A DNA stretch of 64,000 bases from Paramoeba atlantica. Lineage: Eukaryota; Protista; Discosea. Below are positions 20,992 to 56,349 of the stretch, in pieces. Made by a program: the position numbers and the translations under genes. Position 1 is the stretch's first letter. The number at the start of each line of letters is the position of its first letter. Location of the stretch: contig CDRNVI010000009.1 of assembly GCA_977017575.1 (NCBI GenBank), forward strand, positions 62,001-126,000. The letters are read 5' to 3'. A model generated the notes under the pieces. It was not told the origin of the DNA. It ran no database searches and worked only from the letters and a program-made list of their open reading frames with translations.

Positions 20992-23610
20992 GGAGAATGC
21001 TCTCCAGAGAAAGAGAAAAAGCAACTGCGGGAACGATCCACTCGCTTGTGGAAGCCTCCGTCGACAGCAGCAATTAACGTACGAGCGATGCGATCTCGGC
21101 GTTGAGTCCTCTGGAAAATTGTGCCTCGAGTGGGCTCGGAAAAATGTCTCAGGCATCCGGAATGATACTATGGGCCACTCACAGCATGTTCGATGTAAAG
21201 TATGTGGGTGGGTGACCCATAGCAAGGGGGAGAATTTTTGTTATAAACATTTGAAAGAGTGCTGCTCGAAGGCGCAGCAGGGGATGGAAGACTCCAGTGA
21301 AGTTGCAAATCCCAAGTCGCTAGAGGAGTACATCTTCGAAGCTCTCCCATGTTTCGCAGCTCAGAGCAATCTTTCTACCGAAGGATTCCTCGAGTGCGTA
21401 AAGAACTTATTTCAAGAATTTCCCCCCGACATACATCCTTCAGAAGCTGCATCGATCCTTCCTTCTCCTCGCGAATTTCATATCAGTGAACGTTGAATTG
21501 CCGACATGATCTGGGAAGACATTCGACGAACCATAGATGGAGCTAAATTCTTTGGCCTCGCCATCGACGATGGAGTTGACAGGGTTCTTAGCGAACATGT
21601 ACTTATCGCCATTTTGTATGTTGTGGATCGCCACTTTATTCTCCCACCTATCTACCACCCTAAGCACAAATCATTTAACGGTAGCGAGATGGCACAATTC
21701 CTGATAGAAGTACTTCGGTCATGCCTCTCCGAGAGCCGACTCCTAAAGTTGCGATTCATAATGGCAGACGGAGCCCCAGTAAATAATGTGGCTAGGCAGG
21801 AAATAGAAACCACTATGTTAGGCATTCGTGACTCTCTTGTTTCCGCAGAGGAAGAATTTTACTCGCGCCTCAGCTCTATCGGAAGCACGGACCGGGAGAA
21901 CATTGTAATTGGCGTGACGAAGCACTGTCCACGTGTCGCGCTATTACCATGCTTCGGACACTTGTTTCATAATATGGCCAAAGATGCAGTGCAGCACTAC
22001 GCAAATCTGCCAATTATGAAAGTAAGAACATACTTCTCCAGGATTTTCTATGCAGGGGACCGTGTGGGGGCAAAGAAGGGGAAGTATTTCGGAAAAGCTC
22101 TTGAAGATATATTAAGCGCCTTTGACGAAGAGACTCAAAAAGCTGAATCGTACTTTAAATCTTTTTATCGTTCTGTGAACAGCGAAAAACTTGACAAGAG
22201 GGGTCGCAGGGACACCATAGCTCATCTCAAGGAAGCATTGCAAACTCTCTCGAAAGTATCTTTAAAGGCACGCGATGTGTTTGCCGAACTGAATCAAACT
22301 CTGGAAATGGAAGACCAATGTGAGATTCTAATTGCGAAAGGTGCTAGTGTGCTGAAATCCATTGCACATTCTCATGAAATTCGAGCCGTCACTTCTCCCA
22401 AACTTGGCGGGGTCACGCGGTGGCTCGCGGATAAATTCGAAAGCATGAGGTTTTTGGCTGATCAGTTGCCTACTGTCCCATCCTTCATAAAAAGTGAACT
22501 GGAAACTCTGCGAGCCCCTCAATCTGTCCACCATTTGGCTGATTTGTTCGAAAACAACTCTTTGAACGACTTGATGCAGTCTGCGAAGGATTTCCTGAAA
22601 GACTGTATGCCGTTACGCATCGCACAAGAAAAATTCTCTGACATGCAGGATCGTCCTATGGCAACTCTTGTTCATCCAACTTTGCGACAGCTTGTCGAGT
22701 CTGCTGAGAATTCACCCAGGCATTTCTTAGAGTCGATACATCGGCACGTCAATAGAGTATGCTCAAACCACGAGATGAAGGTATGGGCAGCTGTGATGTG
22801 GTTTTCGCCTGAGTGGATCGTCTTATCCGCTCGACCTCGCAAGAAGGAATCCCTTTCAGTGGAATGGATAAATGATTTGTTGGGAACTGGCGACCCGATT
22901 TTCGACATTACTATTGAGGAATGGAGTACGTACGTAAACTGCGACGATTACCAGTGGACACCCGGCATGAGCGATCTTGAGTGGTGGCAAACACTTGGGT
23001 TGAAACATTTTCCGACAATTTTTGAAGCTGCATTGCATTACCTATGGCTTCCTCCGCTAGTGACGGCATGTGACTCTATCCTTTCGGTGCTTTCCTGGAA
23101 ATATTGTGCCCGTCAAGCTCGCATTGGAACAGATGTTGTAGCGACACAAATGTTTCTTCGCGGAAACGAGAACCCGCTACCGTATCGTACAAGTCGTGCA
23201 AAAAAGGCGGCAAAGCGTGGATCTGACATGGAACACTCCATATAAAATAATATCGAACTACATGGCGCACAGAGTATCATACATATAGAGTATCGTAGCA
23301 TACAGGGTATACATTGCGGTAAATATCAATTGAATTGCGGTAAATATAATATGTGGTAATATTGCGATAATATTCGTACGTCCAGAGCTCCGTTTTGTGG
23401 TATTTCTTCTCCGTATCTGAGATATTTTTCTCTGTTTTTTTTCTCAGTGTTCAACAAGCGAAATACTTTTTTCGTCCACAGCAACGGTTTATTGTACTAT
23501 TATGCACTATGTATTGACGTCGGAACTGGGTTCTGTGGTTTAACTCAGTGTCGTGTAAGTCCTTGAAGTATTCCTTCAGGTATCTTTATCAATTCAGAAT
23601 GGAATTTCAA

Positions 23611-25863
23611 TTAGCGGACACCCGCCTTCCTCCACTCTTTTACCGCGGAGGATAGTATCGCGGCGTTGCCTTTTTGAACAACCACATTAATGGCTTGTAG
23701 TGCATGACGCAGTAAACCTTTCTTGTCATACGTATACCTTGCGATCTCCTTTAGGAGGAGTACGGTGCGCTTCCCTGCCACACCAAAAATGGTAAATGCA
23801 AGGGAGTAGAAATGCATACCCCTTTTCGTGGCCATGTCACTGTGCGCTTTTACTTTCAAGCTTTCCACCCTTTCTAGAGTGTTGCCAGGCTCTACCCATT
23901 CGGCCTTAACAAAAGAAGGGGCGAGGGGGTTAACGACGGTCACGTCCACCAGACATATCTTCACTCCCAGCATAAAGCAGACGTCGGGGCCCTGACCAGC
24001 AGAGAATCGGGGTTCATGATTGTCAGGAGTGAATCCGTACTGTCGTAGCAAGTGCGCGAAGGCATTCTTAACAAGTTTGTGGCGAGTGGCCGCAGTGTCG
24101 CCTTTGACTTTATTGCAGTCAAGGGCGTGCACAACAAAATCTTTGTTTGAGAGGATGTCTCCGCACTCACATTGTGCGAAAGGGTCCGAAGTAGGTGCTA
24201 TCAAGTATCGCATGCGCATGGCTGTTTGCCATTCTGCGTCGCGCATGAAGTACTCACCCCGATTCCTACGCGCCTCTGTCCAATTGCGCGTTCTCTTGTC
24301 CATCAACTGAAGTGAATGGACGTCATGTAGTTCGCTGGTTTCTTTACGCACTGCTGACTTCGATTCTTCATATCTTGTCAAGGCAGAACGTCGTCTTTCC
24401 ATACACCCTAATACCTCAGCTTTTGTGCGAGAATACAGAGTTGCCGCTTGCTGCGCAAAAGGTTTCGCCCCCAAAAGGTCGCCCGTCATGAGAGTACTGT
24501 GAAACGGGTTCTTTTCCAGGTCTTCGAAGCCTCCTAGAAGCTCTGAGGCACACTCCTGTATGGCCTTGTCCGCTAACACGTTGGCTTTTGCCGTTACCTC
24601 CGGCTCATGACACCGCATTAGGTAGTCCCACCGGGGGACTCCACATCTCTTCAGCAAAATGTAAGCACTTTGTAACGAGAGATGTTGCAGCCGATCCAGG
24701 AATGTCTGCAATTTAGGCATTTGGTTGACTACCCATCTGGTTTCATCCGCGCCTTCCTTGGAGACGAATGCACCTAGGAGCTTTTGTCCTTGCTCCGCAT
24801 GCTCTATGTTCATACCTCTGAAAGGAGCGTACTGGTCATTGAAATGCGTCGAAAGCTTACATTTGGCCGGATGTACCTCCAGTCCTATTCCCGAAGCGTG
24901 ATCACAGAGAGCGCCAAACGCCTGTGCGACACGTTCTGCCGGGCCGATGATTGAAAGGTCGTCTAGGTAAGCCCAAAGCGTCAGATCACTGAACTCATCC
25001 TTCAATTTTCCAAGAATTTGGTGCAAGCCGAGAGAAAACAGTAACGGTCCTAATGGGTCGCCTTGTCGGACTCCCCTCAGAACCTTAGTCGGCGAACACG
25101 AGGAGTTAAATATCGTAGTTGGAGCCCCATATACATATGAGGCCACCCCGTATAGCTCGTGAAATTCATCATTTCCCCTTAGATACTGAAACACCGCGCT
25201 TCTTTCAATTGAATTGAAGGCGTTACGGATGTCTACTGTCAAGAGCACAAAGTCCGCTTTTTGACGAAACGCGTTTCTTGCCCTTAATATTATTTTAGGT
25301 CCTCCGTTTCTTGTTCCAACACCAAATTGTGTATCTTGGAAAAGTCTGCCCGTTGCTTCTGCTACCCTGTCCATGGCGATTTGGCTAGCCAATTTAAGAA
25401 AGATTTCCCCCATTGCTATAGGTCGGCAGGCTGGGGATCCTTCTACGGAAGGGCCCTCCTTGCGCAGCAAGATCAGAGTGGAGCTGGTTAAGACGTCCGT
25501 TAGCTGAGCGTCTCGGGAGTTTCGCAGCACTGCTGTAGCTATCCAAGTAACGCAGGCCACGATATCCTGGTCCTCTAGGAGCGGTATAAGAAGTTCGCGT
25601 GTCCAGCCTGATGGGCCCGGCGCGGATCCTTTGGCGAGCTTTCTAGCCCTGTCAGTTAAGGTTTGCTTTTCGATGTCCATAGATTTTGCCGGCAAATGTT
25701 TATAACCCCGAAAGGCCTTTGGGTGAAGTCGATCTATGGCCTTAGCGATCTCTTCAGTAGATAGTGGGTGTCGTTCCTTCGCCTCTAGCGCTTTTGCCGC
25801 TTTCCCGATCGCACCAAGTTTAAGCAGTGCCTCTGCTCGGCCTACCGGGTTAAATTTTGCCAC
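23611..25863 (-). CDS. Reverse transcriptase with zinc knuckle and restriction-like endonuclease
   Basis: APGPSGW, RPIAMGE, QFGVG, DIRNAFNS, GVRQGDPLGPLLF, AYLDD, CECG...HALDC and GPDV...VDVT (PD-D/ExK). Confidence 0.95.
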   Translation of the reverse strand: MAKFNPVGRAEALLKLGAIGKAAKALEAKERHPLSTEEIAKAIDRLHPKAFRGYKHLPAKSMDIEKQTLTDRARKLAKGSAPGPSGWTRELLIPLLEDQDIVACVTWIATAVLRNSRDAQLTDVLTSSTLILLRKEGPSVEGSPACRPIAMGEIFLKLASQIAMDRVAEATGRLFQDTQFGVGTRNGGPKIILRARNAFRQKADFVLLTVDIRNAFNSIERSAVFQYLRGNDEFHELYGVASYVYGAPTTIFNSSCSPTKVLRGVRQGDPLGPLLFSLGLHQILGKLKDEFSDLTLWAYLDDLSIIGPAERVAQAFGALCDHASGIGLEVHPAKCKLSTHFNDQYAPFRGMNIEHAEQGQKLLGAFVSKEGADETRWVVNQMPKLQTFLDRLQHLSLQSAYILLKRCGVPRWDYLMRCHEPEVTAKANVLADKAIQECASELLGGFEDLEKNPFHSTLMTGDLLGAKPFAQQAATLYSRTKAEVLGCMERRRSALTRYEESKSAVRKETSELHDVHSLQLMDKRTRNWTEARRNRGEYFMRDAEWQTAMRMRYLIAPTSDPFAQCECGDILSNKDFVVHALDCNKVKGDTAATRHKLVKNAFAHLLRQYGFTPDNHEPRFSAGQGPDVCFMLGVKICLVDVTVVNPLAPSFVKAEWVEPGNTLERVESLKVKAHSDMATKRGMHFYSLAFTIFGVAGKRTVLLLKEIARYTYDKKGLLRHALQAINVVVQKGNAAILSSAVKEWRKAGVR

Positions 25864-26034
25864 ACTTTTGGTATAAGCGAAGGGGTAAATTTTGGTTCTT
25901 GCTCGGCCATCCGCTTTCGTAGTTCATACGCCAGTTGCCGATGAGTCAGTTGACTTTCGGGCAGGAATAAGAACTGCTTCACTGCGCATAATAGGTTCCA
26001 CGACATCTTTGCTTTTGTGTCTGTGTGTTGTATT

Positions 26035-28236
26035 TCAGTCTCTGCATATTCCACCGCATAATTCCTTCCAGCACGGTAATTGCAGGTGATATAATTTACG
26101 CAGACTAGGTCGCGTAATCAGTTTTGTGTATGTTTCCCGCAGGCTTTGTATTTCGTGGAGTTGACGAGGCGGAAGATTTGTCGTATTACACAGTTTCTGT
26201 GAGATATGCGATCCCGATTGAACCTCTTTGGTTGAACAATCTTCGAATATTCCTCCAACAATCTTCTCCAGTATGGCCCCACGTGGGACTGCTTCTGAGG
26301 CCCCAGATATGCAAGGGCTTCCAGGGTGAATTTCTTCCAGATTCAACACATCTTTAACTCTTGTTTTGCTTCCCTTGGGCCGGCCGCGTGGGCGCTCCGG
26401 GCCTGGGTTTCCCTCTATCGTCGAGTCTGCTTGGATCTGAAGTGACCCGAGATCCAACGAACCTGAAGGTGTGAACTTTCTTCCGGGGGGTCGGCCCCTC
26501 TTCTTACCCGGTCCGGGGTTGCTTTCAATGCAGCCTCGGATCAGCTGGGTGCGTACTTGCGCTTTGGACCAACCAGAGTTGGCGATGACGTTTTTAGTTG
26601 ACCGGAAACACCACACTGCCCGTGGGCCGGGGTTGCTCTCAATACCCCCTCTTATTAACCATGTATGAACTTGGTCTTTGGACCAGCCAGTTTCTGATGA
26701 CAGAACTTCCGGTGGCCTAAAGCACCACCATGAAACCCCGCTCGCATCCTTAATTTGTTCCCAGGATTTTGACAAAGAAAGTTCAATGCCTAGAAAGTGG
26801 CAGATAGCAACAGGGTACTCAACCGGCGCTACACCCTCAGGTATACGGATTGGGTGATCTTCAATTTGACAATAAATTGGGATTTCGTTGCCTGACTTTT
26901 CTCCTGGTGGGGCCTTGATAGTAGCCCCGTACACGCATTCCGTCGTCGGGGGACCGATAATCCCAGAGAGAGGTAACTCTTCATATGAGGTGGGATCCAC
27001 GATTTGAATAAGGCCGTTTGGGAGTTGAATTGTGGCTGCCACGTGATCTCGGAGCAATCCAAGTGACGCGCTTGGGCTGAGCCCTGTTACCAGGACGTGG
27101 GACGTTTTCTCCGGTTCCAGGAACAACGCCACTTTGGTCACATAGGATGCATGAGTCTCCGAATCAAGGGAAGAAATATCATCTTCATCCCACTCGCCGC
27201 CGAAACCACCTGGTTCGTCAATGGAAGGCCTAGAACTGGGGGTAGCACGTTTAGGGGGCGGCGCACGTTCGAGGTGGAGGTGGGTAACGCGAGGAAGAAA
27301 TCGCGACGCGATGTGGAGGCTGGAATCTTCCTCTTGATTTATTATGCGATCTCGCATTTTGGTATATGACAAAAACAAGCTTTCTCTTTTCAGCGCCTGA
27401 GATTGAATAAATCTCGCATTTTGCTTCTCCCTAGCGGCGGAGTGCGACCGCTGATGTTCCTCCAGGGAAGACTGATCCATAAATTTGCGATGGCATGTGG
27501 AACAAATGTGGCCACCGCGCTCGACAATCCGCAGTGCATTTTGGCACTGCTGCTGCAGGTTTAACATGTGGTGCATGTGTTGTTCCTGCAGACGCCGAGC
27601 TTGTAACATCCACTTGTATTCTAGCTTGAGACTCTGAGTCTGTAACTTGTGGATTGCAATCATATTATGAAGAGCGCCGTACTTGGCGACTTCCTGAGTC
27701 TGAAGCTCCCGCTTCAGTTCCCCAAACCGTTCTGCAAAGGACTTCCCTGGTTTCAGCGCTTTCGGTTTAGAGGCCACTTGGTCGTCATCTAGGCGTGAAG
27801 TCCCACCTGCGCGCTTGGGGAAGGGAGACAAGCGGGACGTGGTGGAAGTCCCGTAGTTCGACTTTGCGGGTTTTTTGGACTCTTTGAGAGAATGACCAGC
27901 TGTCAAGTGTGAATAAGTCAGACGTGATGGAGCCTTCTTGTCCTCATTCGAGCTGCCCTTCGAGAAACGAAGAGACGAAAACGGATTGTGAACTGCGGGA
28001 GCTGGATCAAGTCGTTTTTGAGATTCTGTGAGATCCCCCTTGGAACTATTGGCCGGGCGTTTACCTGCACGACCAGACGGTACATTCGCGTTGTCCACAT
28101 TCGCGAGCGTTTGGAGACCACGAATACGATGGTCCCCCCGGCGAAGGTTGTGAGCAACTGTTCTCTTTTCGGAGAGAGAGGAAATGAAAGACGTAAAAAG
28201 TTGAAATAGATCTTCAGTCTTCACTCCTGCCACCAT
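26035..28236 (-). CDS. Retrotransposon N-terminal ORF: C2H2 finger, three 2A-like motifs, two AT-hooks
   Basis: CSTCHRKF...LEEHQRSH; GGIESNPGP, GCIESNPGP and STIEGNPGP; KRGRPP and PRGRPK. Confidence 0.8.
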   Translation of the reverse strand: MVAGVKTEDLFQLFTSFISSLSEKRTVAHNLRRGDHRIRGLQTLANVDNANVPSGRAGKRPANSSKGDLTESQKRLDPAPAVHNPFSSLRFSKGSSNEDKKAPSRLTYSHLTAGHSLKESKKPAKSNYGTSTTSRLSPFPKRAGGTSRLDDDQVASKPKALKPGKSFAERFGELKRELQTQEVAKYGALHNMIAIHKLQTQSLKLEYKWMLQARRLQEQHMHHMLNLQQQCQNALRIVERGGHICSTCHRKFMDQSSLEEHQRSHSAAREKQNARFIQSQALKRESLFLSYTKMRDRIINQEEDSSLHIASRFLPRVTHLHLERAPPPKRATPSSRPSIDEPGGFGGEWDEDDISSLDSETHASYVTKVALFLEPEKTSHVLVTGLSPSASLGLLRDHVAATIQLPNGLIQIVDPTSYEELPLSGIIGPPTTECVYGATIKAPPGEKSGNEIPIYCQIEDHPIRIPEGVAPVEYPVAICHFLGIELSLSKSWEQIKDASGVSWWCFRPPEVLSSETGWSKDQVHTWLIRGGIESNPGPRAVWCFRSTKNVIANSGWSKAQVRTQLIRGCIESNPGPGKKRGRPPGRKFTPSGSLDLGSLQIQADSTIEGNPGPERPRGRPKGSKTRVKDVLNLEEIHPGSPCISGASEAVPRGAILEKIVGGIFEDCSTKEVQSGSHISQKLCNTTNLPPRQLHEIQSLRETYTKLITRPSLRKLYHLQLPCWKELCGGICRD

Positions 28237-28969
28237 TGGCTCCTTAGCGCCGAGAAAACATTTCGGACAGATTTTGTACGCATTATTCGCTTGAATCGGC
28301 GATCACAATCACGGCATGTTCTCTTGGGGAATTCCCAGGCGGGCATGTGGGAGTGAGAGACTAGAAGTAAAACAACAAGGAATGGAATCAACAAGGTACA
28401 TAAACTGTAATCTTTATTGTTAATTCAGAATAACATATAAATAAATATTTATGCATTGATGAAAATAGCCACGTTTAGTATTTTTTATTACACTACAATA
28501 TATTAATTTTATTCGTATATTCGTGCTACACGCTCTTGATCTGTTTCTTTTCTTACATCATATACCAATGAAAAATATGTGAGGAAGCGTTTATGCGCGG
28601 AATGCGAGATCTGAGCTCCTTTCACCCCTCAACTCACTTTTTCACGCACTCGACTCAACTTTCGCTCAGGATAAGCATCCTTTCACCTCTCTGTGCGCAT
28701 CTGCGCTGTGGTAAACCAAATCAATTCCTGATTTTTAAGGAAGTTTATTGGTTAATTTGTTAAGTAACTGTTGGAGAATGAAGCATTCAGCATATTCTTC
28801 TGCTTCCTTTGTCTTGAACGTTGAATTGCTTGAGGTTTTCCATGCGTCCGTTGATTACGATTAGTAAATACCCAGTCTACAAAAAAGTAGTATCTCATAG
28901 TATATACTATAGTATATACTAGCTGAATACTAGTGTTTTAGTATATACTAGTATACTAGTTAGACTATG

Positions 28970-54194: not shown

Positions 54195-55085
54195 TTACTC
54201 ATTCTGATTTGTGACACTGATCTTCGTGTTTTCGATACTGAGTGTAAGAGACGCGGGGAGACGATTAAAATCAATCTCACCGTAAAGTTCAGCATTCTTA
54301 TTGAGAATCAGTAGTCTTATTCCTGGAGGAAGGTTGCAAAGCTCCACTAAGCCTTTAAAGCAATTGTCTTCGCAACTGAAGTATGCCAAGGAAGGAGGCA
54401 AATGTTGGAGGTCAAGGGTCCCACTGAATCTGTTTCGAGATAAATCAAGAAATCGAATAGTTTGAGGGAGACAATGGAGTTCAACATCACCATAAAGCTT
54501 TTCAACGCTATTCATAGAGTAGATTGACAACGACGTCAAGCGCAAAGGCAAATGGCACAAATCTACCCCCCCTTCAAACATATTCTGGTCCAAATAAATC
54601 TCACCTAATCGATGCGGTAACTGACTAAATTCAAGCTGACCTCTGAATAAATTACTCTTTAGATTAAGATACGAAAGCTCACTAGGGAAAACATTGAACG
54701 GAAGAATCCCAGATAACTGATTGGCGTACAGCAAAATTTTTATCACTGTATGAGGCAACCGTTCCCAGCGTAATAAACCCTCATAGCCTAGTCGACTCCA
54801 GTCAATACCTGTCACATAGCCATCAAGATTGCAATTCATGCCATTCCACTGACACGCCGGTATGGAAGTGTTCCAGGAGAGGTGCGGATTTTCAATGTTT
54901 TCAACAAATCCCGCAAGTTCATATTCCTGTGGTATTTTTGCTCCTCGTACCTTCGCCGTACGACGGGCTTCAGGGTTTGCCTTATCACTTAATGTGGTGT
55001 CTCCTTCGTTTCGTTCCTTTGTCACGGGCGGTTGTGTATCTGCTAGATGAGCGTGATATATTAGTGTCGTGAAGCACATATACAT
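54195..55085 (-). CDS. Leucine-rich repeat protein
   Basis: LADTQPP leader, KVRGAKIPQEYEL, CQWNGMNC cap and LRRs. The likely start is MYMCF (55085); the ORF is open to 55208. Confidence 0.9.
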   Translation of the reverse strand: MYMCFTTLIYHAHLADTQPPVTKERNEGDTTLSDKANPEARRTAKVRGAKIPQEYELAGFVENIENPHLSWNTSIPACQWNGMNCNLDGYVTGIDWSRLGYEGLLRWERLPHTVIKILLYANQLSGILPFNVFPSELSYLNLKSNLFRGQLEFSQLPHRLGEIYLDQNMFEGGVDLCHLPLRLTSLSIYSMNSVEKLYGDVELHCLPQTIRFLDLSRNRFSGTLDLQHLPPSLAYFSCEDNCFKGLVELCNLPPGIRLLILNKNAELYGEIDFNRLPASLTLSIENTKISVTNQNE

Positions 55086-56349
55086 GTAGTAAGATTTCGT
55101 ATTGGATATACAAATGTCATTAGAGATTTTTAAACGGCTTTGTATAATCGCCGTCGAAAGCAGCGAAAAATAAAAAGACATTTTTTTGACGACATTTTTA
55201 TTTTTCAAAACAATTCAAAAAAGAATTTGACACATCAAAGGTCGTGGAAAACGGCCGATAGTATTATGGATTACACTCATGGTCCCCAACCACGACCCGT
55301 CCTCTCGGACCACAGGTCAGGGTGTTTGACGGCACCGGAGTTGGATCACTCCCCTCCCACCCACTCCCCTCCCCGCCGAACATACCCCGTTCTTCCTATG
55401 TTACTCCTTGGGTATGGCCCACGAGTTCGCGGGCGCATGAACCCCTTATAATCTGGAAGAAGGAACCCTCTGCTGGTGTTTCCTCCCCATAGAGAGATTG
55501 ATCGACGTTTCTGGCTGGTCCATGGCCCTGTTTAGGAGCAACCTACATACATGTAGGTTGCTACATGTACATGCAGGTTACCTATGTAGAGGACGCATAG
55601 ATTCAACCACCGGTCCGTAAGCCCTTGTCGCCTTTGACACCGTACCGTATACTGTGAGATCCGCAGACAAGTGTTTTCAACCCAAGTACGCAGATCATAT
55701 CCAGAAAGCCGCAGTAGAGTGCACATTCTCAAGATATGTGTGTTTCTTCCCTGAAAACTTTTAGACCGGTTCCACCGCTGACATCCTTGAGCACATGAAT
55801 ATCACGGACCCACACTGTACTTGAAATTCATAAAATTAGGCGCCTCGATACCATGCTTACTTAGAAGAAGATCATGCTTAGCCGAAGATGTTGTGGGATT
55901 ACTGAGGAAGGTCTAAAAGAGAATCGCTTTTTAGGGTACATTTTTACCATAGCACCCCCCCAAAAAAAACAAGTAATAAGGGGAAAAATATAAAAAGGGG
56001 GAAAAAATCCAAAAAAGGGGGGGGGTCCATGAGGGGAGTCCATGGGGGTGTATCTACTTAGGGGGGGCCAAGGTCGAGTAAATGTTTTTGGAAAAAAATA
56101 ATTTTCGAAACAAACCCGCAGAAGGGGTAACCGGGGTCTTGGCGTGCATTTTCCATCCCCCTACCCGGAGGTGACCCCCCCCGCGTATCCGCAGTACAGG
56201 TCCGCCAAGTTCGCATTTCTTAGAGAAAAAGAATTTCGCCTTCGTTGAAAAATTGACGAAAATTCATTTTTTCAAAATTGTTGTTTCCCATAATGTATTT
56301 TGAGAGTTTGGGACCTATACTAGCTTTCTACGCCGCTGTTTTCACAAGA

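Follow-up and report, generated by a model that had tools for sequence, protein, structure and literature searches.

The older restriction-like-endonuclease (RLE) lineages of retrotransposons are usually pictured with one multifunctional protein, and descriptions of 2A/StopGo sequences in retrotransposons have, to our knowledge, so far concerned APE-type LINEs. The locus analyzed here, in a 64-kb stretch of DNA (the window), raises the question of why a non-LTR element of the RLE type encodes three NPGP motifs in series, and whether its single open reading frame (ORF) might yield more than one protein. The minus-strand translation of positions 26799-25700 contains ..LIRGGIESNPGP.., ..LIRGCIESNPGP.. 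and ..ADSTIEGNPGP... The NPGP codons, at 26634-26623, 26520-26509 and 26409-26398 on the minus strand, are spaced by 114 nt (38 codons) and then 111 nt (37 codons), which agrees with an earlier note on this DNA that had left the strand unstated. Six-frame translation of the 64 kb contained these three NPGP and no others, and the pattern [VI]E.NPGP, found 3 times in the window, occurred 0.00 times in 40 shuffles, which rules out chance or low-complexity origin of the motifs.

The first two motifs belong to a duplicated 38-codon unit, WCF..GWSK.QV.T.LIRG(G/C)IESNPGP, as had been proposed. Unit 1 (26623..26730, minus strand) covers 36 codons and ends in the core GIESNPGP (p12=G), from which a break is predicted between the G at 26628-26626 and the P at 26625-26623 (minus strand). 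Unit 2 (26509..26622, minus strand) covers 38 codons, has the core CIESNPGP (p12=C), and is the unit nearest to the single unit of a related family, B (pN 0.06, pS 0.75). Unit 3 (26398..26475, minus strand) is 2A-like and homologous to the others, with the core TIEGNPGP (p12=T); the earlier reading of this core holds for the window copy and not for the element generally, as the sister copies encode TIEENPGP. The core octapeptide (D/G/C/N)(V/I)ExNPGP fits units 1 and 2, while unit 3 is a rare p12=T variant. Units 1 and 2 share the upstream context GW(S/T)..V..L(I/R)RG with six families; in unit 3 the GW and L.RG signatures are gone, and family B lacks NPGP at the corresponding position. StopGo activity is very likely for units 1 and 2 and doubtful for unit 3.

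Substitution of G, C or T for the conserved Asp had been regarded as unusual, but these are published active StopGo variants. According to Li et al. 2026 (PMC12846837), RNA viruses have G at p12 as often as D, p12=C is more than 95% active and p12=T 88.5% active, and all three are active in natural viral contexts and in reticulocyte lysate. The p11-p12 pairs (G/A)G fit the ending of motif 5 in that article. The residues further upstream, with W 13 positions before p12, L at p8 and R at p10, are unlike the motif descriptions with which they were compared.

Two putative AT-hooks are interleaved with the units. AT-hook 1 (GKKRGRPPGRK, 26476..26508, minus strand) and AT-hook 2 (ERPRGRPKGSK, 26365..26397, minus strand) immediately follow units 2 and 3, where the earlier note had placed them, and both have an R-G-R-P core with basic flanks. 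The two stretches matched by Pfam AT_hook scored 13 bits (E 0.1), short of the 17.4 cut-off. In families B and C60, which have one 2A each, AT-hook 1 likewise comes after it. KRPRGRPKGSK follows the second unit of the C26 copy and was also found in a related family of fragments.

The element that contains these features, a copy of family A, is a non-LTR retrotransposon of about 4.8 kb (23605..28408, minus strand). Its 5' head is a spliced-leader-like 20-mer read from the sequence (28389..28408, minus strand), which is unique in the 64-kb window (0 matches expected) and found at the element's 5' head only; homology of another family A copy begins at 28383. The 3' end lies 6-8 nt past the stop codon and has no poly(A). 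Genome copies of family A share a common 3' end at about window position 23605 and are mostly 5'-truncated. The domain order of the family is a C2H2 finger, tandem ubiquitin-like domains, three 2A motifs with two AT-hooks, reverse transcriptase (RT), and a CCHC knuckle with restriction-like endonuclease. In the window copy the first part of the ORF (733 aa, 26035..28236, minus strand) ends at a TGA at 26037-26035 that is not in frame in sister copies. A helical, coiled-coil-like stretch precedes the C2H2 zinc finger (aa 243-265, 27442..27510, minus strand), which scored 18.5 bits with Pfam zf-C2H2 against a cut-off of 25.2 and whose C..C..H..H pattern is also present in family B.

The assignment to the RLE type, also made earlier, is supported by motifs, by fold and by the domain content. 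The RT domain (24838..25431, minus strand) matched Pfam RVT_1 (E 1.2e-17), the sole Pfam match of a relevant kind, and no APE domain was found with Pfam. The CCHC knuckle and PD..D..K endonuclease (23614..24171, minus strand) were identified from columns that are invariant among the 11 relatives compared (C, C, H, C, R-H, D, D, K) and from an AF2 model of the region (pLDDT 80.3). R2 proteins were the best PDB sequence matches to the RT, and a Foldseek search with the C-terminal model returned R2 retrotransposon proteins at ranks 1-7 (E 2e-6, TM 0.55-0.58); R2 is the only RLE clade represented in the PDB comparison. CRE elements, the type to which the earlier note had assigned the element, habitually insert into spliced-leader genes. 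Insertion of the present family inside spliced-leader RNA genes was not seen: the 3' flanks of at least 8 independent copies vary, none is leader-gene sequence, and insertion is not confined to one target. No clear target-site duplications were present at ten 5'-truncated copies, so no target preference can be claimed and a link between the AT-hooks and AT-rich targets stays conjectural.

Compared with all other copies, the copy in the window lacks TT between 26038 and 26037 and 1 nt between 25873 and 25872, the ends of an out-of-frame stretch (25872..26038, minus strand) delimited by comparison with every other copy. These losses result in two in-frame stops (26037-26035 and 25926-25924), both downstream of the 2A motifs, and because of them the window copy is unable to make the RT product. 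Judged by its sequence, it is an inactive relic that still displays the design. Assembly error is a possible source of the two small deletions, although position 25873 also carries a substitution. The sequencing runs located for the organism all come from one study and look like DNA; no RNA run was among them.

Sister copies have a single ORF of about 1,542 aa from finger through endonuclease, and in these the NPGP sites lie in frame between separable functional parts, which bears out the proposed position of the motifs between a zinc-finger protein and an RT-endonuclease in one long ORF. No fully intact full-length copy was found among the copies read; the C4 copy, for example, has NPGR at unit 2 plus an N-terminal frameshift. 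Nearly all copies read keep NPGP, and a few decayed copies have single substitutions. Family A is young: its copies differ by just 1-3%, and so they provide no independent test of unit 3.

More distant comparisons were possible across the genome. The 25-35-aa module GW(S/T)..L.RG(G/C)(I/V)E.NPGP was counted in at least 106 places in the 45.7-Mb genome, a subset of which was read individually. It lies upstream of RT, often in tandem pairs, in at least 6 diverged families whose RTs are 31-41% identical; in other words, NPGP is conserved both in other copies, the check suggested in the earlier note, and in diverged families. Synonymous differences between module copies were saturated (pS 0.63-1.0) and nonsynonymous differences were few (pN 0.06-0.37). 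Within a 12-codon core, unit 1 and the C60 family differ at 8 of 9 synonymous and at none of 27 nonsynonymous sites; for units 1 and 2 of the element the counts are 9 of 9 and 1 of 27. Conservation was equally strong in the single-site families B and C60. Because the peptide has been kept while synonymous sites are saturated, these data indicate protein-level selection on the module, both among the families and within the element (units 1 and 2). The differing synonymous sites rule out recent recombination as an explanation for the peptide that the families share.

What has been conserved corresponds to StopGo. The invariant residues of the module (I/V, E, N, P, G, P) are exactly those that StopGo requires, and the variable ones are p12 (G/C) and p15, which also vary among natural StopGo sites. 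Between families A and B, the block of 2A and hook is the best conserved, with 69-72% identity versus 27-40% elsewhere. The duplicated units hold just the last 25-38 aa and no whole domain, about the length of native sequence that is reported to contribute to full activity (more than 30 aa in FMDV). A transcript of the prokinetoplastid Apiculatamorpha spiralis encodes a finger or fingers, then ..GCVEPNPGP, then an RT 38% identical.

Upstream of the units, positions 26719..27141 (minus strand) encode two tandem putative ubiquitin-like (beta-grasp) domains, predicted with AF2 and Foldseek. The AF2 model, made from a 5-sequence alignment and of medium confidence, had a mean pLDDT of 71.7, with 82-91 over most residues. 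Its best Foldseek matches were linear di-ubiquitin, polyubiquitin and ISG15 (E 3e-4 to 1e-3), with TM 0.6-0.7 against single ubiquitins; the region had no match at the sequence level. A word-based protein search with the ubiquitin-like/2A region of family B returned only itself, and a profile search returned 21 matches among 1.84 billion representatives. Eight of the 21 were looked up and are ENA-only, and the module-bearing ones among these match loci of the same genome. From the absence of other matches, the N-terminal protein looks lineage-restricted. Cys/His boxes picked out by eye in the metagenomic relatives P0098 and P0108 had suggested a ubiquitin-protease-like protease; Pfam gave MLLE and OGFr_N instead, and the suggestion was rejected. 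The upstream half of the module may itself belong to a ubiquitin-like fold that ends in L.RGG, and part of its conservation could have this cause.

The locus is probably best understood as an inter-protein junction of a single-ORF, R2-like non-LTR retrotransposon, whose products would be separated by StopGo at (G/C/T)IE.NPG|P. In working copies of family A, a single ORF of about 1,542 aa would be translated, and at each of these sites, we infer, the ribosome would free the nascent chain without forming the Gly-Pro bond and then continue, giving an N-terminal protein and an RT-endonuclease of about 537 and 930 aa, respectively. The first of these, with its coiled-coil-like stretch, C2H2 finger and two ubiquitin-like domains, probably has a nucleic-acid-binding role like that of LINE ORF1p, and the new N-terminus of the RT-endonuclease would be an AT-hook. 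Tandem sites would make separation more complete, since the fused fraction is the product of three failure rates, and would probably also reduce the yield of RT protein relative to the N-terminal protein. A 38-aa peptide and a 37-aa AT-hook peptide would be by-products. The earlier note had proposed such a four-product split, in which selection lends backing to units 1 and 2.

The predicted loss of RT yield could instead be the main effect, with the motifs acting chiefly as translational brakes that cause ribosome stalling or drop-off and little RT-endonuclease, and with clean separation secondary. Low RT dosage is the rule in LINEs, and the effect would compound over three serial sites. In a recent preprint (10.64898/2026.06.17.732966), 59-70% of the retrotransposon-associated 2A-like peptides under test were classed as reduced-abundance, and most retrotransposon 2A-like peptides lowered protein abundance with no clean skipping, though these data come from human cells and short peptide windows. 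Another 2026 preprint reported a highly active peptide in only 7.4% of 2A-bearing retroelement contigs. Skipping needs identical residues, however, so a brake shades into StopGo separation rather than replacing it, and the single-site families B and C60 are conserved just as strongly. We consider a brake as the chief function unlikely.

The ubiquitin-like domains allow a different explanation, in which the conserved peptide provides the second domain with its C-terminal strand and tail (L-x-R-G-G, like LRLRGG in ubiquitin), a deubiquitinase-type protease of the host or the element cuts after the di-glycine, and NPGP is incidental. The region upstream of the module does model as two such domains, the second lacks a confident last strand in the model, and QVHTWLIR-GG stands about where strand and tail would be expected; NeSL, another RLE lineage, has a known cysteine protease. 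The fold argument is weak, however, as pLDDT in the tail region is below 50. The di-glycine also varies, with RGC in unit 2 and three families and RAG in one family, whereas (I/V)E.NPGP is invariant at saturated synonymous divergence, and extra units of only 25-38 aa have been kept with no ubiquitin-like body before them. Cleavage after the di-glycine therefore appears very unlikely. A combined form, in which the 2A module also supplies the second domain with its last strand and L-x-R-G-G tail and the StopGo product is trimmed by a deubiquitinase to a free di-glycine, seems highly improbable. If it were true, the zinc-finger protein released by StopGo would end in a ubiquitin-like tail and six further residues, and the retrotransposon would encode a ubiquitin-like modifier or a degradation or targeting signal, of which the RGC and RAG variants would be non-conjugatable. 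A reading of the motifs as relics without function, or as chance resemblances within a decaying repeat, is scarcely credible despite the dead window copy, the NPGR of one sister copy and the degenerate upstream part of unit 3, given the shuffle test, the peptide kept across families at saturated synonymous divergence and the at least 106 sites with NPGP retained in nearly all copies read, and for units 1 and 2 it is already contradicted by the sequence comparisons.

Separation by StopGo, the reading that we favor, has a close known counterpart in L1Tc/ingi (Heras 2006; Odon 2013, PMC3708506). These are likewise single-ORF non-LTR elements of a kinetoplastid-type host in which an in-frame 2A precedes the enzymatic part, with the same would-be consequence of discrete products from one ORF. 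Function of 2A in trypanosomatids is documented for L1Tc (cited in PMC3708506) and in PMC10830525. L1Tc/ingi elements, however, have an APE endonuclease and one 2A near the N-terminus with a D(V/I)E.NPGP core, whereas the present elements have a restriction-like C-terminal endonuclease and 1-3 copies of 2A after a finger/ubiquitin-like protein of about 540 aa, with G, C or T at p12 and GW(S/T)..L.RG upstream. In Cordylochernes scorpioides, 2A likewise joins a nucleic-acid-binding N-terminal protein and RT in one ORF (preprint 10.64898/2026.06.17.732966); those elements differ in their arthropod LINE context and L1-type ORF1p, have an APE domain in one of two cases, and are without ubiquitin-like domains, tandem units or AT-hooks.

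RNA viruses provide working examples of tandem 2A sites. Picornaviruses of the Paavivirinae (PMC11512398) and totivirids (preprint 10.64898/2026.09.24.754024), in which the sites are back-to-back, also have serial NPGP sites that arose by duplication before the same downstream protein; these are viral polyproteins, whereas here the sites are in a cellular retrotransposon and the spacers carry AT-hooks. With R2, R4, CRE/SLACS/CZAR, NeSL and Hero the element shares a single ORF, an N-terminal zinc finger, RT, CCHC and a PD-(D/E)xK-type nuclease, whose fold matches solved R2 proteins. It differs in that its insertion, with varied 3' flanks, is not confined to one target, and in the 2A, for which no report was found in those clades, or in any RLE-type element, in the literature searched; the novelty claimed earlier for this context stands within that scope.

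New here is the triplication of the StopGo motif together with AT-hooks. More broadly, the 45.7-Mb genome holds a radiation of RLE elements in which 1-3 predicted StopGo modules lie between an ORF1p-like protein and the RT-endonuclease. The tandem units, which are old and under selection, are natural material on the purpose of tandem 2A, whether this is to complete the separation or to control dosage. In addition, the modules represent p12 = G, C and T in a cellular setting outside viruses, with an upstream signature of their own, and could help in mapping 2A sequence space and serve as kinetoplastid tools. If skipping does take place, these elements would have reached a two-protein organization by an independent route, without a second ORF.

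A single minus-strand frame of the window (26799-25700), within the ~4.8-kb non-LTR retrotransposon at 23605-28408 (family A), carries three motifs on translation: ..LIRGGIESNPGP, ..LIRGCIESNPGP and ..ADSTIEGNPGP. Each closes one repeat (units 1, 2 and 3). The NPGP codons lie at 26634-26623, 26520-26509 and 26409-26398 on the minus strand, and the motif ends are separated by 38 and then 37 codons. NPGP occurred at these three motifs only in a six-frame translation of the 64-kb window, and [VI]E.NPGP was observed three times there versus 0.00 in shuffles. GKKRGRPPGRK directly follows motif 2 and ERPRGRPKGSK directly follows motif 3; the Pfam AT_hook profile matched two stretches, both under its cut-off. 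Motifs, spacing and following strings were as the earlier note had described three 2A/StopGo-like motifs with AT-hooks, and only the strand had been left unstated.

The window copy has two ORFs in the same minus-strand frame: one of 733 aa (28236-26035), which holds the motifs, and one of 750 aa (25863-23611). Pfam analysis identified a C2H2 finger in the first, RVT_1 in the second, and no APE domain in the element's ORFs. R2 retrotransposon proteins were the second ORF's best sequence matches among solved structures. Its C-terminal 300 aa bear a restriction-like-endonuclease signature, with columns C, C, H, C, R-H, D, D and K invariant across 11 relatives, and the model of this region (pLDDT 80) had R2 proteins as fold matches 1 to 7, followed by PD-(D/E)xK nucleases. 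The proposed assignment to the restriction-like-endonuclease type was thus borne out by the invariant columns, the R2 fold matches and the lack of an APE domain.

Sequence comparison indicated that the window copy is broken, its two ORFs being parted by two in-frame stops. The window copy lacks TT between 26038 and 26037 and a single base between 25873 and 25872, all of them present in every other copy spanning the respective junction. With the missing bases restored, the frame stays open through the 2A region and on into the RT, and the restored stretch aligned with family B, another family of this genome, whereas the window's own frame has the two stops. Family A is therefore built as one ORF of ~1,542 aa, with predicted pieces of 537, 38, 37 and ~930 aa. 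Among the genome copies of family A, none seen was both full-length and fully intact: the other full-length copy (contig C4) carries an N-terminal frameshift and reads NPGR in unit 2.

The genome searched (45.7 Mb, 248 contigs) contained more than 40 copies of family A that were 97-99% identical. Most were 5'-truncated, with a common 3' end a few bases past the stop codon, no poly(A) and varied flanks, which is the behavior of a young non-LTR retrotransposon. No clear target-site duplications were found at ten 5'-truncated copies, and no target preference emerged from them. A 20-mer (..CAGTTT.TGTAC..TTG; 28389-28408, minus strand), resembling the 3' portion of a kinetoplastid-type spliced leader, heads the window copy and abuts the body of the element. 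The flanks of this copy (23400-23600 and 28409-28900) were both ~99% common to the C4 copy, indicating that the two full-length copies represent one insertion, duplicated later. The 3' flank recurs without the element at five other places (97-100%), and the insertion lies within or beside another repeat (hAT-like ORF, 21506-23245). Many insertions form pairs that sit on different contigs with identical truncation points and flanks (loci L004/L005, L006/L007, L008/L018, L012/L013, L014/L015, L016/L017 and L024/L025), which suggests either segmental duplication or haplotypes left uncollapsed by the assembly.

Conservation of the NPGP motifs in other copies, a question raised with the original observation, was confirmed across copies and extended to diverged families: the module WCF.P...L..(S/T)GW(S/T)...V...L(I/R)RG(G/C)IE(S/A)NPGP precedes the RT in families of the same genome with RTs 31-41% identical. 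Families B and C60 have a single unit and then the AT-hook that follows window motif 2. RGCIEANPGP and then a basic stretch occur in three or more of the copy lineages sampled (C12, C25 and C66), and other families carry a pair of units (GGVEWNPGP and GGVEQNPGP) at a distance of 40 or 65 aa. In one two-unit ORF of 1,247 aa, on C63, the units are followed by fingers, then RT, CCHC and an RLE-like region. Among the families compared within the genome, C54 had no module upstream of the RT. A 36-aa module profile matched at least 106 places in the genome, many of them tandem pairs. The protein search gave two relatives with NPGP upstream of an RT 38-39% identical: P0004, from another family of the same genome, and an Apiculatamorpha spiralis transcript (strain PhF-6, a free-living prokinetoplastid) that encodes ..GCVEPNPGP. 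Metagenomic relatives P0098 and P0108 (40% RT-RLE identity) are without NPGP and have MLLE (PABP C-terminal) and OGFr_N upstream of the RT in the same long ORF.

Several other arrangements were observed. A truncated module in the window (55471-55545, plus strand; ..WCFLP..SGWS..NL) ends before the RG..NPGP core, adjoins a leucine-rich-repeat ORF (54195-55208, minus strand) and probably derives from a different element of the same group. In the family at locus L045 (G000:C12:828300-835900), about nine tandem Pro/Ser/Gly-rich repeats of ~48 aa (ORF residues ~120-560) separate the single 2A from the RT. At G000:C54:730572-752544 a two-module unit is repeated five times with a period of ~5,438 nt, suggesting tandem elements or a gene holding an element fragment, in tandem.

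The module residues L8, R10, (I/V)13, E14, N16, P17, G18 and P19 were unchanging, while p9, p11, p12 and p15 varied. In the predicted model the two domains immediately before motif 1 resemble linear di-ubiquitin or ISG15, and the ~30 residues preceding NPG are modeled as helical with low confidence. Conservation of a ubiquitin-like di-glycine tail would fit the residue pattern less well than the needs of StopGo would: the di-glycine is not kept (RGC or RAG in several lineages), and the duplicated pieces are the last 25-38 aa alone rather than the whole domain, approximately the native stretch reported to matter for full StopGo activity. Selection was assessed by Nei-Gojobori counts on a 35-codon module between pairs of lineages, and every pair had saturated pS (0.63-1.0), with pN at 0.06-0.37. 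For the 12-codon core, 8 of 9 synonymous and 0 of 27 nonsynonymous sites differed between unit 1 and family C60, and 9 of 9 and 1 of 27 between window units 1 and 2. Because synonymous sites are saturated, recent recombination and a nucleotide-level signal are both out as sources of the peptide identity, indicating purifying selection on the peptide. These codon comparisons showed that units 1 and 2 are constrained at the protein level; their duplication is old, and both have been retained.

Of the three StopGo sites originally proposed, units 1 and 2 likely have that function, given this constraint, and unit 3 is uncertain, having lost GW and L.RG. Unit 3 and the module are homologous by sequence: in a related fragment family, IEENPGP plus hook as in unit 3 comes after a canonical upstream half (93% DNA identity). 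The corresponding position in family B reads DPNPIE. The only argument in favor of unit 3 is that all four independent insertions of family A, no more than 1-3% apart, have kept it. A 417-nt fragment with identical boundaries in four copies (L027-L030; G000:C8, C56, C30 and C52) has an ATG start, a canonical module (..GWTKHTLQVELIRAGIEENPGP) and the second AT-hook, and its element match ends before the RT; in L028, the only copy fully read, an LRR-like ORF follows.

The replacement of Asp (p12) by G, C or T had been presented as unusual, which was overstated. G was found at p12 in 1,207 clustered viral sequences versus 908 with the exact D motif, the StopGo core was widened to (D/G/C/N)(V/I)ExNPGP, and native-context activity was >95% for C and 88.5% for T (Li et al. 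2026, PMC12846837). Non-LTR 2A sequences are known from L1Tc/ingi and several APE-type clades, and REL-endo clades were presented as plain single-ORF elements (PMC3708506, PMC3894237). ORF2p-like hosts of 2A mostly have APE, and in two cases the 2A lies between ORF1p-like and ORF2p-like domains (2026 preprint 10.64898/2026.06.17.732966). Tandem viral 2A sites were shown to work (preprint 10.64898/2026.09.24.754024). In the literature searched, we found no report joining 2A with restriction-like-endonuclease elements.

The interpretation first proposed is partly supported, being right on element type and likely StopGo function, and the skipping itself is what we infer from sequence. At each active site the chain would be released at NPG and synthesis would resume at Pro. 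Serial placement would compound the chance of separation; it may also reduce the RT dose, and this is where the main doubt lies. One product would be a finger/ubiquitin-like protein resembling ORF1p, and the other, the RT-endonuclease, would start with an AT-hook, or in other families with a basic stretch. The AT-hook may aid nuclear import or AT-rich DNA binding.
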